The translations under genes were made by a program, and so were the position numbers. From sequence record PP355766.1: DNA of 64,000 bases. One strand, 5' to 3'. Positions 13,221 through 63,564 of this stretch are shown in pieces (within the stretch, counting starts at the first letter, position 1; each line of letters opens with the position of its first letter). The notes under the pieces were generated by a model. It saw nothing but the letters and a program-made list of their open reading frames with translations, did not search any database and had not been told where the DNA came from.

Positions 13221-14358
13221 ATGAAAATTGCAGTTGTAGACAAATCACCGAATAACGTCCGCTATCAGAAACACTTCGAACTCTTCGACCATGAGGTTGA
13301 GACCTTCTTCATGGCTAGTGAGAAAGTAACCGGGCGACTGCTCAAGAAACATATCACTATCGGAACACCGGAGAACCCGTTCAATCCGGAAGATTTTGAT
13401 TACGTTATTCTGGTAGGTGCAGACCCGTTCTTGAAGTTTGCAGCTAAGAAAGGCATTTCCGATTACTCAGGTAAACGTGTTGAGCACGATGGGTACGCTA
13501 ACTGGATTGCAAGTATCAGTCCGGCCCAGCTCCACTTTAAGCCGGAAATGAAGCCTGTATTTGAAGCCACAGTAGAGAGCATTCATGCCATTCTCAATGG
13601 TCGTGAAAAACGCTCCAAGGCAGGTGATTACCGCCCGATTCAGTGCCCGGATGAAGCCGAAGCGTATGTGAAGATGGTGTATACCATGTGTCCTGGCATG
13701 ATCGCATATGACTCCGAAACCAGTGCGCTGTACTGCCGAGATGGTTACATGCTGGGGATCTCAATCTCCCACCAAGAGTATCAGGGCGTGTATATTGATG
13801 CAGACGTCATCACAGAAAATACCGTCTATTACTTACAGAAGCTGTTCGATAGCCCGGAACATGGCGTTGTGTTCCATAACTTGAAGTTTGATATGCACTT
13901 CTACTGCTATCACTTAGGTCTATCCTTTGATAAGGCAGCAGAAGAGAAACGCCTCCACGATACCATGCTGATGCACTACGCCCTAGATGAACGACGTGGT
14001 ACACACGGTTTGAAATCTTTGGCGATGAAGTATACCGATATGGGGGACTACGATTTTGAACTCGACCAGTTCAAGGAGACGTATTGCAAGACGCATAAGA
14101 TCAAGAAAGAGGATTTCTCGTATGATCTCATTCCGTTTGATATCATGTGGCCTTACGCAGCGAAGGATACCGATGCAACACTGCGTCTATCCAATTTCTT
14201 CCTGCCAAAAGTAGAAGCTAACCCTCGACTGAAGTCTCTGTATTACGATGTACTGATGCCGGGATGTGTATTCCTACAGCGTATGGAAGACCGTGGTGTA
14301 CCGATCTCCAAAGATCGTCTGAAAGAGGCTCAGGTTCAGTTAATGACTGCGCTACAGC
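13221..14358 (+). CDS. pol: T5-like family A DNA polymerase, 5' fragment (3'-5' exonuclease region)
   Basis: MKIAVVDK, AYDSETS, FHNLKFD, YAAKDTDAT; in-frame continuation at 63784-63894. Confidence 0.95.
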
Positions 14359-15645
14359 TAATACAGCGGACTTAGGACAAATTAATATTCGCGCAAGAAC
14401 TACTGGAGGCACTTCTTCTGGTGATTTTAGCTTCCGTTCTGACGGCCGACTTGATGTTCCTGTAGCAGTTAAAGTTGGTGGTGCAGCAATGCTAACCAAA
14501 GACGGGAATATTACATCTGGCTCGATGTTTGGCGGTAACCTTAACAACTATTTGACTTCTATTAAAAATGATATCACCACTGGCGATAGTAAGCAAGTAA
14601 GCAAGACTGGTGATACCATGACCGGTAACTTGACTATTAACGCTAACTTAAAAGTCGAAAATCCTAGTGGAACATTTGTTGATTTAGGTTCAGAGAACTC
14701 AGATAAGTACAGCAGATTAACCCTTGCTCGTAAAGTTGGCGATGGCGCTGCTGTGGCAATGCTTAAAATTACTCCTGAAGGATATGTGCAATTTGGTTAT
14801 CAAACTGCAGTTTCTACTCCATCTCCTACTAAGTACATCCGAGTTAAACCTGATGGTCTTGATGTAGAAGGTGATTTAGTTTTTAATCAGACCTATCGCG
14901 GCACTGAAGAGGCAGTTGATATTTCTGATAAGACCATTGACCTTAACAGTCTTATCATTAAAAGAACCGACCCAGGTACTCGTCAACTGTATAAATGCAT
15001 CTCTTCTGGTGGTGGTTCTAAGATAGCAAACAAACCCACATCTGATGGTAACTTTGTTCTCGAAGTTCTGTCTTTGCGTAAAGTTTCTGATACCGATTGG
15101 TCATGTAAGCAGACCTTTACTACAAAGAATAACACCACTGTTGGCACATATGTTCGCTATGCCCAAAATGGCTCATGGACTGCGTGGAAAGAGGTTGTTG
15201 CTGGTGTTCAACCGATCAATTTAGGCGGTACTGGAGCAACTTCTGTAGCTGCTGCTCGTAATAATCTTGGTGTTGGTGAAGGACAAACTGTATCATTCGG
15301 TAATTTAGTTACCAACGACTTAACTGCAAACGGAAACGCTAGATTGGTTGGAAGACTGAACCTTGGTTCTACTTCTGCGACTGGCGTATTACGAGCTAAT
15401 GAAACTGGTGCGGTTGTCTTAGGTTCTGCTAGTGGTCAAAACATCCACATCAGAGCAGGAAGCCCCGATACTTCTACTGGTGAAACCCGCTTTGAGCCAA
15501 ATGGAAACGTTTTAGTTGGTGGAGTTCTGACGTCTTCAGGAAGCTTGCAAGTAAATGGCGAAGCCACGATGAGCAGAAGCTTGATCGTTTCTCAAAACAT
15601 AAAGAATACTAACGATAATAGTTTTATTCTGATGGGAAAAGATTC
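14358..15645 (+). CDS. Long tail fibre, internal fragment (T4-like gp36/37 type)
   Basis: VSKTGDTMTGNL and GGTGATS.A.ARNNLG repeats; no own start or stop. Confidence 0.8.
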
Positions 15646-16875
15646 AGTTAAATTAAAAGATGCTCCAATAGATACTGACCCTTTAAGCCCGACATTTGGT
15701 GAAAAGGTATTTGAAAAGGAAGTATCTCATATAACAGGCAATCCTAAATCTGTATGCTTTAAAATGGATTCCGTTGGAGGCAAAATCTTTGCCCTTATTA
15801 CCGGGGAAGTTAAAACCTTAGGATTAGACCCAACAGACCCACAGAACGTTGTGGATTCTACAACTAAAGGCGTCTATGTTTACCAAGAAGGCACAAATAC
15901 TTGGAAGCGCGTATTTGGTAATACCGATGAAGAAAAACGTCGTATAGAGCATTTATGGACTTCTATGTCAACTGACGGAAAGGAAATATTCTTTTCATCA
16001 GCAAATTTTAAGACAACAGAGTACGCTCAGGATATTGAGCTTGAGACGAAATATCCAGAACTAATTTCTACCGCAGTTAAAAATGTTAACCCAATTCAGT
16101 ATCACTCTGATAAGCATTATCACATGATGAGTTTCCGAGCGGATGAATTTTCAAGATGGGAAACATTTGTTCCTGGACCGATGAGGTTTTATGCTGAGCC
16201 TTGGTTTGTCTGGATGGCTCGTGAAGGTAACAGATGCTGGATAAGTACAGCTGACCATGCAGTTGTCATTTATAATGATATTCTTTATCAAAAAAGAGTA
16301 GATACAGCAGCACAGGGAACTACCGAGCGCATTCTTTCGGAAGTGTGGGATAAAGGCGACGCAACGTTTTATTGCCCTCCGGTTTCATTTAACGGATTTT
16401 TGCAGTATGCTTCTGGTATCATGTTTCACGAGCCAGATGGAAAGCTGATAGGTTATTATGCATTCGATTATCGTGTTCGTGACCAGGTAACGCTTAACTG
16501 GAAACCAACTGATGTAATGTTTAAGGCGTTTCTGCAGAACCAAACCCGTGAAGAAGATTGGACTCCTGAACATACTCCAGGCTTGCGTGACCCGGATTTA
16601 CGTCCGTATCTTACTAAAATGATGCCGGATAGTTACTTGCTACAAGATAGTAATTTTGAGCACTTTTGTAAGTACTATCTCCAATTCCTTTCGGATGGAA
16701 ATGGAACACATTACAACAGTCTCGTTAATCTTGTTAAGAACAAATATCCTCGCGAAGAAAATGCATGGGAATATCTGTGGTCAGAAGTTTATAAACGCAA
16801 CATTTATCTGAGTAAAGACGCTCGTGACGCTGTCGTCCGTTTCTTTGAAGCACGCAAGAATGATTTCTATGCTAC
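15646..16875 (+). CDS. 7: Baseplate wedge gp7, internal fragment
   Basis: KDAPIDTDP...YKRNIYLSK..RD.V.RFFE.R. Confidence 0.9.
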
Positions 16876-16876
16876 A

Positions 16877-17004
16877 AGTATAGCGTCGTGGAGGTGTCAC
16901 CTTGCAGGGTGATTAACAACCGGAGGACTCCTCAGAACCTTGCCGGCAAGGGCTAACCTTCTCTTCTAACACGACGTCTTAATAGGAGAGCTGCAACTCT
17001 TCCT
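16877..17004 (-). ncRNA. Unassigned structured RNA, copy B
   Basis: Homologous to 38314-38426, with covarying P1 CGTCGTG/CACGACG and invariant blocks. Confidence 0.7.
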
Positions 17005-17009
17005 AAAAC

Positions 17010-17183
17010 TTACATTACATCATATTCTTCAACTAGATATTCGGAATAAGAGTTATTTGCTTTTAGTTCGTCTTTATACTCTTCAGCTTCATGCTTAGTA
17101 TGAAAAATTTTCCTAGGTAAAGAAAACTCGTCATATCCATATTCTAAATTCCAGTTAGTTTCTACTACAACATATACTTTCAT
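17010..17183 (-). CDS. Hypothetical protein (57 aa, MKVYVVVETNW...)
   Basis: GAGGA RBS; translated by hand; lies within the tRNA array. Confidence 0.65.
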   Translation of the reverse strand: MKVYVVVETNWNLEYGYDEFSLPRKIFHTKHEAEEYKDELKANNSYSEYLVEEYDVM

Positions 17184-17285: not shown

Positions 17286-17361
17286 TGGTGCCGGTTGACG
17301 GAATCGAACCGCCGACCTTCTCATTACAAGTGAGTTGCTCTACCTACTGAGCTAAACCGGC
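17286..17361 (-). tRNA. tRNA-Thr (TGT)
   Basis: Full cloverleaf, loop CTTGTAA, CCA. Confidence 0.95.
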
Positions 17362-17885
17362 AATTTAAATCTAGTGCAGTTATTATTCAGGTCTTTAATA
17401 ACTGGGAGAATGTCATGAAAGAAAAACCACTCTCCACCTTCTAAATTATTTTTATATTTATCATGGAAATACTTTTCCAGCTTAATAGCTTCTTGAGAAT
17501 ATCTAAATGACAGTATTTTATACGTTCTTCCGGGTGAGAATGTATTAGCGGTTGCTGCTCGCTGATCGGGCTCTATAGAACGACCGATCTTATATAAATT
17601 TGGATGACGAGTATCAACCATTATATAAATGAAGGCTTGATTGTAATTTTTGCTTATGTCAAAACAGTCTTTAAATTTTAGCAAGTTTAACGCGGCGGTA
17701 CGACAGTACAAATTCCACAATGTTTTCTTTTTAGATAATTTTTTATTTTCAAATTCTTTAATATTGTGGAGTTTAAGCATTGCCACACTTTCAATTAGCT
17801 TAGTAGTTACATCAAAGTTTGTATGACTTATTAATCCAGAATCAATAGCTAATTTAATTTGATTCCAATCTATGTCATTTCTCAT
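17352..17885 (-). mobile_element. GIY-YIG/T5orf172-family endonuclease within a tRNA array
   Basis: FIYIM...LYKIGRS...R....NT.SP...LEK.FH....EWF; low GC. Confidence 0.75.
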
Positions 17886-17904
17886 AATTTTATCCTCATA
17901 AATT

Positions 17905-17981
17905 TGGTACCCCTACCAGGACTCGAACCCGGACTACCGACCTTAGAACGATCGTGTGCTAATCCATTACACTATAAGGGC
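17905..17981 (-). tRNA. tRNA-Arg (TCT)
   Basis: Cloverleaf; CGATC-GTTCTAA-GGTCG; CCA. Confidence 0.92.
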
Positions 17982-17983
17982 TT

Positions 17984-18070
17984 TGGTGCGTCGAACGAGA
18001 CTCGAACTCGTACGGGTTTAATCCCGGGAGATTTTAAGTCTCCTTTGTCTACCAATTCCAACATCGACGC
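17984..18070 (-). tRNA. tRNA-Leu (TAA)
   Basis: Long variable arm; GGAGA-CTTAAAA-TCTCC; CCA. Confidence 0.95.
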
Positions 18071-37873: not shown

Positions 37874-38236
37874 ATGAAAGCATATCAAATTCTTGAAGGT
37901 GAACTTAAAGGCACCATTTACATCGAAGATGGTGATGACGCACGAGTAATCGTTTCAAAAGTTCTTAAAGAAGATACTATTACGGATGCTGAAACCTTTT
38001 ATGGCTACAAGGCGCGTGAAGTAGAAATTGAATATCAACCAACAGTAAAAGTTGAAGGCGGTCAGCACCTGAACGTTAACGTGCTGCGTCGCGAAACCCT
38101 GCTGGACGCGGTTGAGCATCCGGAAAAATATCCGCAGCTGACCATTCGTGTTTCTGGCTACGCGGTGCGCTTCAACTCCCTGACGCCGGAACAGCAACGC
38201 GACGTTATCGCTCGTACTTTCACAGAGGCACTATAA
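37874..38236 (+). CDS. grcA: Autonomous glycyl radical cofactor (Vs.6)
   Basis: [25 protein letters not shown]. Confidence 0.95.
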
Positions 38237-38312
38237 TGTCAATCGAAGATATTAAAGGATACAAGCCACATACCAATGAAAAAATTGGTAAAGTGAATGC
38301 TATCAAAGACGC
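38236..38312 (+). CDS. vs.4: Acb2 (Vs.4), 5' fragment
   Basis: IEDIKGYKPHT.EKIGKVNAIKDA; its end overlaps the start of the 54233-54433 fragment (gctatcaaagacgc). Confidence 0.85.
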
Positions 38313-38313
38313 G

Positions 38314-38426
38314 AGTATAGCGTCAGGAGGTTATGCTTGCGACAGGGAACAACCGACTAGCGGCAATGGACGAACCATTCTCTTCTATCTGACGACTCAA
38401 CGAGGGCATACGCAAGTTTCCCTTCG
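38314..38426 (-). ncRNA. Unassigned structured RNA, copy A, 4 nt after the tRNA-Thr CCA
   Basis: P1 CGTCAG/CTGACG; invariant blocks shared with 16877-17004. Confidence 0.7.
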
Positions 38427-38430
38427 AATT

Positions 38431-38506
38431 TGGTGCCGATTGCAGGAGTCGAACCCGCGACATCTTCATTACAAGTGAAGCGCTCTACCAGCTGAGCTAA
38501 ATCGGC
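38431..38506 (-). tRNA. tRNA-Thr (TGT)
   Basis: Cloverleaf; CTTCA-CTTGTAA-TGAAG; CCA. Confidence 0.95.
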
Positions 38507-38604
38507 TTAAGACGGAAATAAGGATTCGAACCTTATGTAGTTGCACAGACGTATCTGCCGTTGAATTCCTCACTAAGTTTAAGCAACTATTCCCTGGGTC
38601 TTAA
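38507..38604 (-). ncRNA. T-arm-containing structured RNA between tRNA-Leu and tRNA-Thr
   Basis: TTAAGAC/GTCTTAA, GGAA/TTCC, TAGTTGC/GCAACTA, ATAAGG-TTCGAAT-CCTTAT. Confidence 0.6.
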
Positions 38605-38606
38605 TT

Positions 38607-38691
38607 TGGTGCACCGAGAGGGATTCGAACCCTCAATCCTTGCGGCGGGAGATTTTAAGTCTCCTGTGTATACCAGTTCCACCATCGATGC
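38607..38691 (-). tRNA. tRNA-Leu (TAA)
   Basis: GGAGA-CTTAAAA-TCTCC; variable arm; CCA. Confidence 0.95.
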
Positions 38692-38695
38692 GAAA

Positions 38696-38772
38696 TGGTC
38701 GAGGCAGAAGGATTCGAACCTTCGACCTGCGGATTAGAAGTCCGCTGCTCTATCCAACTGAGCTATGCCCCG
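38696..38772 (-). tRNA. tRNA-Arg (TCT)
   Basis: GCGGA-CTTCTAA-TCCGC; CCA. Confidence 0.95.
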
Positions 38773-62990: not shown

Positions 62991-63564
62991 TTACAAAATT
63001 ATGTTTACCCTGAACCACATGGCTACTGAACTGTTTGGACCAGAATTTCTGGCTATGACAGCATTCATCTTAACTATTTAAGGAAAATTATGAAATTCTA
63101 TAAAATCTCGTCATAAGAAACTTGTTAAACACATGAGGACTTTATAATGTCTAAAGTAGATAAAAAGGTAGTAGAGAAATTTGAGATGTTCCTAGAGCGT
63201 AAGTTTGCTCCTGCCTTTGGATGAGACTGATGCCTCCGAGTCCAAAGGAATGAATTTAGCAGGTCATCTGCCAGTAGGTGATGCTGTCGATTCTCAGAGC
63301 CCTGTCTTCGGACGGGGCTTTTTAGTATAGTCCCAATTAGATTCTTCACGGGCTTTAGCACGGTTCTTTTTATAATAATATGCTACATCCCGGCGCCAGT
63401 ATCCGTTGATTGCATTATCAACACAAATGACAATTTTTGTGTATCCTTGTGATCTTCGTAAATGTCAACGCCAGCCAAAGCGCCAGTATATTGAGGATAC
63501 TGATGATTAAAGTCACCTTTATCATACCAAACACCTGAATTTTCAGGGTACTGTTCTAGATTGC

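Follow-up and report, generated by a model that had tools for sequence, protein, structure and literature searches.

The transfer RNA (tRNA) region of bacteriophage T4 encodes two discrete RNAs whose roles are unknown: RNAC (gene rnaC; species 1 RNA) and RNAD (gene rnaD; species 2 RNA) (PMC3014915). RNAC has been the subject of a northern blot (PMC9697503), and evolution of a T4-like phage on a semi-permissive host was reported to give rise to a convergent single-nucleotide polymorphism (SNP) in rnaD (PMC12685909). Two further groups of phage RNAs provide points of comparison. The phi29-family pRNA is a ~120-nucleotide (nt) RNA with two mutually complementary, covarying loops, by which separate molecules pair and, in small podoviruses, form a ring on the packaging motor (PMC4201828). 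ROOL and GOLLD are structured phage and prophage RNAs of 400–800 nt and more; they often lie beside tRNA islands, owe much of their architecture to loop contacts made over a long range, and form homo-oligomeric cages (PMC12286853). Here, we describe RNA-1, an element present in two copies (A and B) in a 64,000 nt stretch of sequence record PP355766.1 (hereafter, the window). Comparative analysis gives good support to the conclusion that RNA-1 represents a structured RNA family of ~115–135 nt, undescribed as judged by Rfam, GenBank annotation and the searchable literature. As to what the element is for, we lean towards a small, structured non-coding RNA (ncRNA) gene carried as a passenger of the T4-like phage tRNA cluster, whose product would be a stable RNA acting through its shape.

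Both copies of RNA-1 lie on the minus strand of the window. In copy A, the CCA end of tRNA-Thr is reached at position 38431; AAUU comes next, the 5' hairpin begins at 38426, and the element ends at 38314 with CUAUACU. The motifs read in copy A by the original prediction, which was made from the window sequence alone, are all present where it placed them. The second copy it had proposed is likewise there, at 16877–17004 (with the covariance model match reaching 17009), and shares with copy A the motifs UAGAAGAGAA, UUGCCG, CGGUUGUU, GCAAG, ACCUCC and GACGCUAUACU.

Family membership was established with covariance models. A model built from nine B-type sequences, with copy A excluded, scores 38.2 bits (E=1e-6) on copy A and 146 bits on copy B, and detects the Erwinia-phage types at E from 1e-5 to 1e-7; run with filters off on the 64-kb window, it gives no match beyond the two copies. 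Models R1 and R2 recover the A-, B- and Erwinia-phage types at E 1e-5 to 1e-36. In total, 15 distinct RNA-1 sequences were collected, belonging to three types: (i) A-type (copy A, KMB17 and one metagenome variant), (ii) B-type (copy B, Pet-CM3-4, Moon, UTI-K4, PG7, CW742, Ursula, EcL8g and one uncultivated virus genome (UViG)), and (iii) Erwinia-phage type (Cronus, FBB1 and one metagenome contig).

The predicted fold begins with a 5' hairpin (H0), followed by a closing stem of 8–9 bp (P1), a 6-nt bulge, a 3-bp helix (P1b), and the hairpins P2, P3 and P4 arranged in a four-way junction. P1 is conserved in sequence, as is the purine-rich bulge, and the B-type carries an extra hairpin, P3a, within P3. 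Independent single-sequence folds recover H0, P1, P2, P3 and P4, with seven members agreeing on most elements. Pair counts were taken from a model-fitted alignment of 14 distinct sequences (44 pairs, 572 cells). Standard pairs occupy 97.0% of the 572 cells, compared with 33–43% when the partners are slid by 1–3 columns; changes on both sides are seen for 29 of the 44 pairs; and none of 500 shuffles reached the observed covariation score. These results bear out the original view of a conserved, covarying structured RNA whose helices are kept by compensatory changes. The evidence for structure is comparative rather than thermodynamic: the folding energies of the single sequences alone do not reach significance (z of +1.0 for copy A and -1.3 for copy B).

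Two automated consensus structures were set aside. Firstly, RNAalifold applied to a MAFFT alignment of all 15 sequences returned the 5' hairpin only, with the A- and Erwinia-type rows misaligned in the middle of the element. Secondly, RNAalifold applied to the B-type alone proposed a GGUUAGC/GUUAAUC helix; UTI-K4, PG7, and the A- and Erwinia-type sequences support the local hairpins P2 and P4 instead.

The pairing pattern also identifies the coding strand. Recurrent G-U pairs close P3 (11 of 13 informative sequences) and occur in P3a (8 of 10) and in H0. On the opposite strand these would be A-C mismatches, and the RNA is therefore placed on the tRNA strand, as had been proposed. In P1b, GAG/CUC is replaced by CGG/CCG in the Erwinia-phage type. 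This bears on the ACCUCC motif, which is indeed shared by the two copies but is largely helical, its CUC being paired with GAG and covarying to CCG/CGG in the Erwinia phages; for the same reason, an anti-Shine-Dalgarno-like function was rejected as its main role. Antisense targets for the purine-rich bulge were also sought within the window, and the four matches obtained are the two copies themselves and two one-mismatch sites of no evident meaning.

No other single observation supports the fold as strongly as the predicted contact between the H0 and P4 loops. The two loops are perfect 6-nt Watson-Crick complements in all 15 sequences, allowing a contact of 5–6 bp, and the complementarity is held in three versions: CUUGCG/CGCAAG (A-type), UUGCAG/CUGCAA (B-type) and UUACAG/CUGUAA (Erwinia type). 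Full compensatory changes occur at two loop positions, one from G-C to A-U and one from A-U to G-C. A kissing loop between the 5' hairpin and the GCAA loop, which the original prediction had raised as a possibility, is thus supported. Its description of the second hairpin as capped by a GNRA tetraloop is not: in copy A the same loop (that of P4) is the kissing partner of H0, and it has 7 nt in the B-type. The features of the two copies, together with those of their surroundings in the window, are as follows.

38314–38430, minus strand: RNA-1 copy A (A-type allele), whole element, from the covariance model match; identical to native Jiaodavirus sequences, e.g. Roth01.
38401–38426, minus strand: copy A 5' hairpin H0; its loop CUUGCG (38411–38416) is the 5' half of the loop-loop pairing.
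38389–38397, minus strand: copy A P1, 5' strand; the partner strand is 38319–38326.
38380–38382 (GAG) paired with 38327–38329 (CUC), minus strand: copy A P1b, from folding and covariation.
38352–38379, minus strand: copy A hairpins P2 (38365–38379) and P3 (38352–38364) of the four-way junction, from folding and covariation.
38334–38344, minus strand: copy A hairpin P4; its loop CGCAAG (38336–38341) is the 3' half of the loop-loop pairing.
16877–17009, minus strand: RNA-1 copy B (B-type allele, with the extra hairpin P3a), from the model match; identical to KP1079.
16983–17005, minus strand: copy B 5' hairpin H0, with loop UUGCAG (16991–16996).
16919–16947, minus strand: copy B P3 with the inserted P3a, which is missing from copy A; from alignment and folding.
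16897–16912, minus strand: copy B hairpin P4, with loop CUGCAA (16902–16907).
38431–38772, minus strand: tRNA array A (Arg-Leu-Thr), directly upstream of copy A.
17286–18070, minus strand: tRNA array B (Leu-Arg, an open reading frame (ORF) of the T5orf172 family, then Thr), upstream of copy B.
17010–17183, minus strand: 57-aa ORF in the interval between tRNA-Thr and copy B; present in the B-type loci of KP1079, Pet-CM3-4 and CW742, and not in UTI-K4 or Moon.
63214–63295, plus strand: RNA-2, which natively lies right after RNA-1 and here forms part of a displaced block on the other strand.
63296–63330, plus strand: G+C-rich, terminator-like hairpin with a U run, which ends the native RNA-1/RNA-2 unit (-18.5 kcal/mol, z -4.7).

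Both tRNA arrays contain additional sequence. The 177-aa ORF in array B (17352–17885, minus strand) matches T5orf172/MUG113, of the GIY-YIG-related nuclease superfamily, at E ~2e-7; 10 nt of it are shared with the start of tRNA-Thr, and its placement recalls that of SegB, a homing endonuclease of the T4 tRNA cluster. In array A, tRNA-Leu and tRNA-Thr are separated by a spacer of ~100 nt (38507–38606, minus strand), which is also present in Metamorpho and UTI-K4 and not in Roth01. The spacer has a T-arm-like hairpin and complementary ends, is not called as a tRNA by either ARAGORN or Rfam, and may be a decayed tRNA or other small RNA.

The RNA-1 locus was found by BLAST in ~190 genomes among 50,697 phage records. 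The phages concerned infect Klebsiella, Enterobacter, Raoultella, Citrobacter, Cronobacter, Salmonella, Erwinia and Serratia, and belong to the genera Jiaodavirus, Karamvirus, Moonvirus, Roskildevirus and Muldoonvirus. The A and B types are both present in Jiaodavirus, and likewise in Karamvirus; the alleles therefore move between genera. When 185,579 bacterial and archaeal species genomes were scanned with a degenerate pattern, 24 matches were obtained, none of which was confirmed by the model, and the family therefore looks phage-restricted. Scans of IMG/VR, metagenomes and genomes added few new members, and most matches to the pattern, or to an 18-mer from the neighbouring RNA-2, are chance occurrences in coding DNA. 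Literature searches found no paper on RNA-1, and none on the transcriptomes of Jiaodavirus or Karamvirus.

The presence of two RNA-1 copies in the window calls for a closer look at the source record. PP355766 is Klebsiella phage vB_Kpn_AM_K4, deposited as a complete genome of 288,685 bp, whereas native T4-like Klebsiella phage genomes are ~166 kb; the 64-kb window is identical to the record. Copy A and its tRNA array show 100% identity to many native Jiaodavirus genomes (e.g., Roth01), and copy B and its array are identical to Klebsiella phage KP1079. In native genomes, the RNA-1 locus occurs once, at a constant map position. The match of both copies to native genomes breaks off right after ...GACGCUAUACU, and their native 3' neighbour sequence is found as an isolated block of the window (63214–63330, plus strand). 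Six scattered window pieces, on both strands, derive from a single contiguous native Jiaodavirus stretch (loci L001 and L002 served as the native comparison). The record joins sit where the sequences of two strains re-converge after a divergent stretch, which are points at which assembly graphs break, and each of the three protein genes adjoining the three RNA blocks is cut once by a join.

On this comparison, PP355766 is a patchwork, seemingly of concatenated contigs from at least two co-assembled Jiaodavirus strains. Given a patchwork record and one locus per native genome, copies A and B are best understood as alternative alleles of one locus, rather than as paralogues 21 kb apart; it is the record that creates the appearance of two copies in one genome. 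The original prediction of a homologue 21 kb away in a different tRNA array thus describes this record correctly but not the native situation, and the implied picture of two paralogues ending two arrays of one genome gives way to one of alleles from at least two strains. Its suggestion of a link with the T5 tRNA region also falls, as the phage is T4-like (Straboviridae) and not T5-like. The 3' end of each copy—including the 3' boundary drawn in the original prediction—is the point at which the record departs from native phage genomes and is hence also a record join. Gene order or copy number read from the window is unsafe. Long plus-strand ORFs run into both RNA copies (38236–38478 and 14264–16912) because their genes are cut by record joins, giving read-through. 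The start of the first weakly resembles an Acb2/Tad1-family protein (E=9e-4), and this ORF adjoins a glycyl-radical (grcA-like) gene at 37874–38236; the second is a baseplate-wedge-type gene, as annotated in its native counterparts.

The native surroundings of RNA-1 were read from intact phage genomes. In all loci compared, RNA-1 lies downstream of or between tRNA genes, on the same strand, and no promoter-like site was seen in the interval between the array and RNA-1 at the native locus. Immediately after RNA-1 in native genomes comes RNA-2 and, in Klebsiella and Enterobacter phages, then a strong hairpin with a U run; the latter was missed by a consensus terminator scan and is shown by folding. 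RNA-2 (native position L001:2628–2765, here in the displaced window block 63214–63330, plus strand) consists of a covarying stem that encloses an 18-nt loop, with no variation in this loop across the phages of Klebsiella, Serratia and Erwinia, and of a second covarying hairpin; double changes are found in 11 of its 27 pairs. No Rfam match was obtained for RNA-2 in the native loci. The RNA-2 18-mer also occurs by chance in unrelated coding genes of soil bacteria (L030, L039, L041, L053, L056, L065, L066 and others); the soil metagenome contigs concerned include several near-identical groups, and none has the remainder of RNA-2.

The RNA-1/RNA-2 unit is not confined to the ends of arrays. In phage Moon, RNA-1 and RNA-2 lie mid-array, between tRNA-Gly and tRNA-Pro, with tRNAs following the unit and no terminator. 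In Muldoonvirus, RNA-2 abuts tRNA-Gly and follows an rnaD-like RNA that stands in place of RNA-1. From these mid-array positions, RNA-1 and RNA-2 behave as array members, and the original characterization of the element as terminating tRNA arrays does not hold in general.

A cmscan search against Rfam release 15 (4227 families, among them ribozymes, riboswitches, tRNA/tmRNA, pRNA, ROOL and GOLLD) gave no match at either copy at gathering or permissive (E≤10) thresholds, in agreement with the initial failure to place the element in a ribozyme or riboswitch family. The only Rfam matches were tRNAs: nine in the window, and tRNAs alone in the native loci. Rfam holds no families for T4 RNAC and RNAD (RNAC gives a weak tRNA-Sec match), and the negative result therefore says nothing about these two.

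RNA-1 could be a diverged orthologue of T4 RNAD: a known family with an expanded inner domain. The two fill corresponding positions: each is a small RNA gene, oriented like the tRNAs, at the end of the tRNA cluster farthest from the promoter, and the surrounding region is syntenic. The order of tRNAs, RNA, second RNA and e.6 homologue at the RNA-1 locus parallels T4 tRNA-Arg, rnaD, rnaC ... e.6, with the e.6 homologue 61% identical (E=5e-86); comparison of e.8 and trna.3 revealed no similarity. RNA-1 and RNAD may also have an outer frame in common, in which a 5' hairpin is followed by AGUCGUC or AGACGUC opening a stem that ...CGC... closes. The corresponding sequences (GAGUCGUC in copy A, AAGACGUC in copy B, AAGUCGUC in T4) occupy the same structural place, as a motif too short for model significance. 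In addition, the rnaD-like RNA of Muldoonvirus lies directly upstream of RNA-2, the usual place of RNA-1.

Against this stands the failure of the models in both directions. With filters off, the RNA-1 model R2 finds nothing at E≤10 at the RNAD positions of the T4, MX01, IME08, PS2, VP8 and SP1 loci—a set that spans T4, Dhakavirus and Muldoonvirus RNAs—and does not match the upstream RNA of Muldoonvirus at that threshold. Conversely, an rnaD model (R3) built from six homologues (T4, T2, Mosigvirus and three from Dhakavirus) finds neither window copy at E≤10 with filters off, with T4 itself at E=1.9e-30. R3 does detect an unannotated rnaD-like RNA in Citrobacter phage Moon (L007:82–180, E=2e-5), right after tRNA-His; Moon also has RNA-1 at L007:702–832, and the two kinds of RNA thus coexist in one genome. 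The RNA upstream of RNA-2 in Serratia phage PS2 (Muldoonvirus, L010:776–895) resembles the rnaD-like RNA at both ends, weakly (E=0.41). The predicted RNAD fold is one long irregular arm, without a four-way junction or a pair of complementary loops, and rnaD is found in Escherichia, Shigella and Yersinia phages, whereas RNA-1 is found in those of Klebsiella, Enterobacter, Citrobacter, Cronobacter and Erwinia. We regard orthology as unlikely, if worth keeping in view; a possible distant relationship would be limited to the outer frame.

RNAC also differs from RNA-1. Both belong to the tRNA cluster, as RNAC is a stable RNA that lies inside the tRNA array in Karamvirus; RNAC has a tRNA-like 3' domain, whereas RNA-1 has no tRNA signal, and alignment of the two revealed no similarity. 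Enterobacter phage KMB19 carries a clear RNAC homologue within the Karamvirus tRNA array (L024:4570–4665, minus strand), apart from RNA-1/RNA-2. ARAGORN calls this homologue a 96-nt tRNA-Phe, and the equivalent place is given as tRNA-Met in one record. Since the RNA-1 and rnaD models fail both ways, RNAD-like RNA and RNA-1 are both present in Moon, and RNAC stands apart in Karamvirus, we treat RNA-1 as a separate family of the same general kind as the stable RNAs of the T4 tRNA region.

The complementarity of the H0 and P4 loops admits a second alternative, in which the loops pair between molecules rather than within one. RNA-1 would then form head-to-tail dimers, rings or filaments, possibly with RNA-2 as a constant neighbour, in the manner of phi29 pRNA, ROOL and GOLLD. 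Two complementary loops that covary are expected in either case, as covariation does not distinguish pairing within a molecule from pairing between molecules. Precedents exist: homo-oligomers are known for phage RNAs near tRNA islands (PMC12286853), and pRNA, which is close to RNA-1 in size, multimerises via kissing loops (PMC4201828). Yet we estimate that H0, the loop helix and P4 together span ~18 bp, against ~12 bp for P1 and P1b with two linkers of 3–6 nt, lengths that fit pairing within one molecule. At ~120 nt, RNA-1 is also far below the size of ROOL and GOLLD; it has no match to the models of these or of pRNA in the Rfam scan, and it is encoded in the tRNA cluster of a T4-like myovirus rather than by a small podovirus. 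Assembly through the loops is, in our view, improbable; if it were true, RNA-1 would be a new phage RNA class, a miniature counterpart of the ROOL and GOLLD assemblies at phage tRNA islands.

Still less probable is that RNA-1 is a self-cleaving ribozyme, cleaving the precursor either behind the tRNA or where RNA-1 and RNA-2 meet. A compact junction with a tertiary contact between loops would suit a ribozyme, as would nucleotides that do not vary in the junction and tail, and a location where precursor cuts are needed. However, no Rfam ribozyme family is matched at E≤10, the sequence points to no cleavage site, and T4-type clusters are processed by the host enzymes RNase E and RNase P, which suffice for the purpose. 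Nor is RNA-1 a tRNA in disguise. The likeness is there—a four-way junction, a terminal stem, a 7-nt loop in tertiary contact (P4 of the B-type), and a place in a tRNA cluster with presumed co-processing—but RNA-1 has no CCA end, its junction linkers and arm lengths differ, and the P4 loop is partnered by an additional 5' hairpin that is not part of the junction. Neither ARAGORN nor Rfam RF00005 detects a cloverleaf in the RNA-1 copies.

A cis-acting leader, that is, a riboswitch or attenuator controlling read-through into RNA-2 or the downstream genes, is very doubtful. The arrangement in Klebsiella and Enterobacter phages, with an aptamer-like junction upstream of a terminator-like hairpin, is what such a leader might look like; but RNA-2, which covaries independently and has its invariant 18-nt loop, intervenes before the hairpin, tRNAs follow the unit in Moon with no terminator, and no alternative pairing for the P1 3' strand was seen in the downstream sequence. 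Finally, we give almost no credence to the notion that RNA-1 is no RNA gene at all, but a coding remnant, a DNA-level site (a target for a homing endonuclease or for recombination) or an artefact of assembly. The record is scrambled and has a join at the end of each copy, plus-strand ORFs enter both, and a nuclease-family ORF lies in array B, but the same sequences are intact in ~190 independently deposited native phage genomes, the helices show compensatory substitutions and strand-specific G-U pairs, the plus-strand ORFs are read-through from truncated neighbour genes, and the small ORFs annotated at the locus are not conserved and have no family match.

Those annotations deserve a brief comment. 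In native records, the RNA-1 locus is either blank or covered by small ORFs. Roth01 and other Roth phages carry one GenBank coding sequence (CDS) over RNA-1 (L001:2526–2618, 30 aa, 'anti-CBASS protein acb1') and another over RNA-2 (L001:2664–2816, 50 aa). A PHROG search with the two gave no match, and the ATG of the 30-aa 'acb1' ORF is missing in KMB17. These CDS calls look spurious.

We return to the reading that we favour, a passenger ncRNA gene of the tRNA cluster. RNA-1 would be co-transcribed with the tRNAs as one precursor, as its genomic context suggests, and the host tRNA-processing nucleases would free it at the flanking A/U-rich linkers, as context and the example of T4 indicate. By analogy with T4 RNAC and RNAD, it would then persist as a compact, stable RNA whose shape enables it to act in trans. 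Its most likely mode of action would be binding to a protein of the host or the phage, with enzymes that handle tRNA or process RNA as the obvious candidate class of partner. The distribution of constraint fits this outline. The P2 loops and the entire P3 tip are free to change both in sequence and in length. Constraint is seen instead in P1, the bulge, the loop-loop pairing and the 3' tail CUAUAY. The constrained parts are those that define the fold, and there is no long conserved single-stranded segment for antisense pairing; action via shape is therefore preferred, and an antisense or cis-regulatory role is less likely. Two observations suggest a host partner: (i) the split between hosts, with RNAD in Escherichia phages and RNA-1 in the Klebsiella/Enterobacter group, and (ii) the convergent rnaD SNP in a T4-like phage adapted to a semi-permissive host (PMC12685909).

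Several points weigh against this reading. The alignment behind the pair counts was fitted to the model and is thus biased towards structure, and the variation comes from three clades only, such that many of the counted changes are inherited rather than independent. The pair counts consequently overstate the number of independent events; nevertheless, the gap to the slid controls is still large. The blindness of covariation to intra- versus intermolecular loop pairing applies here as well. The strict conservation of P1 and of the CUAUAY tail exceeds what an RNase E-type linker needs, and could mean a specific cleavage or recognition event. Lastly, the transcription, processing sites and stability of RNA-1 are drawn from its context and from T4.

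The tRNA clusters of T4-like phages, by this account, hold at least four RNA families—RNAC, RNAD, RNA-1 and RNA-2—that are modular and swapped between genera and alleles. In the roughly fifty years for which T4 RNAC and RNAD have been known, neither has been given a function. Of the four families, RNA-1 is the one whose structure emerges most clearly from comparison, and it offers a defined object for structural biology and expression work. A covariance model for RNA-1 would correct annotations of the kind described above, 'anti-CBASS protein acb1' among them. The locus is carried by ~190 deposited phages of the Klebsiella/Enterobacter group, many of which are therapy candidates.

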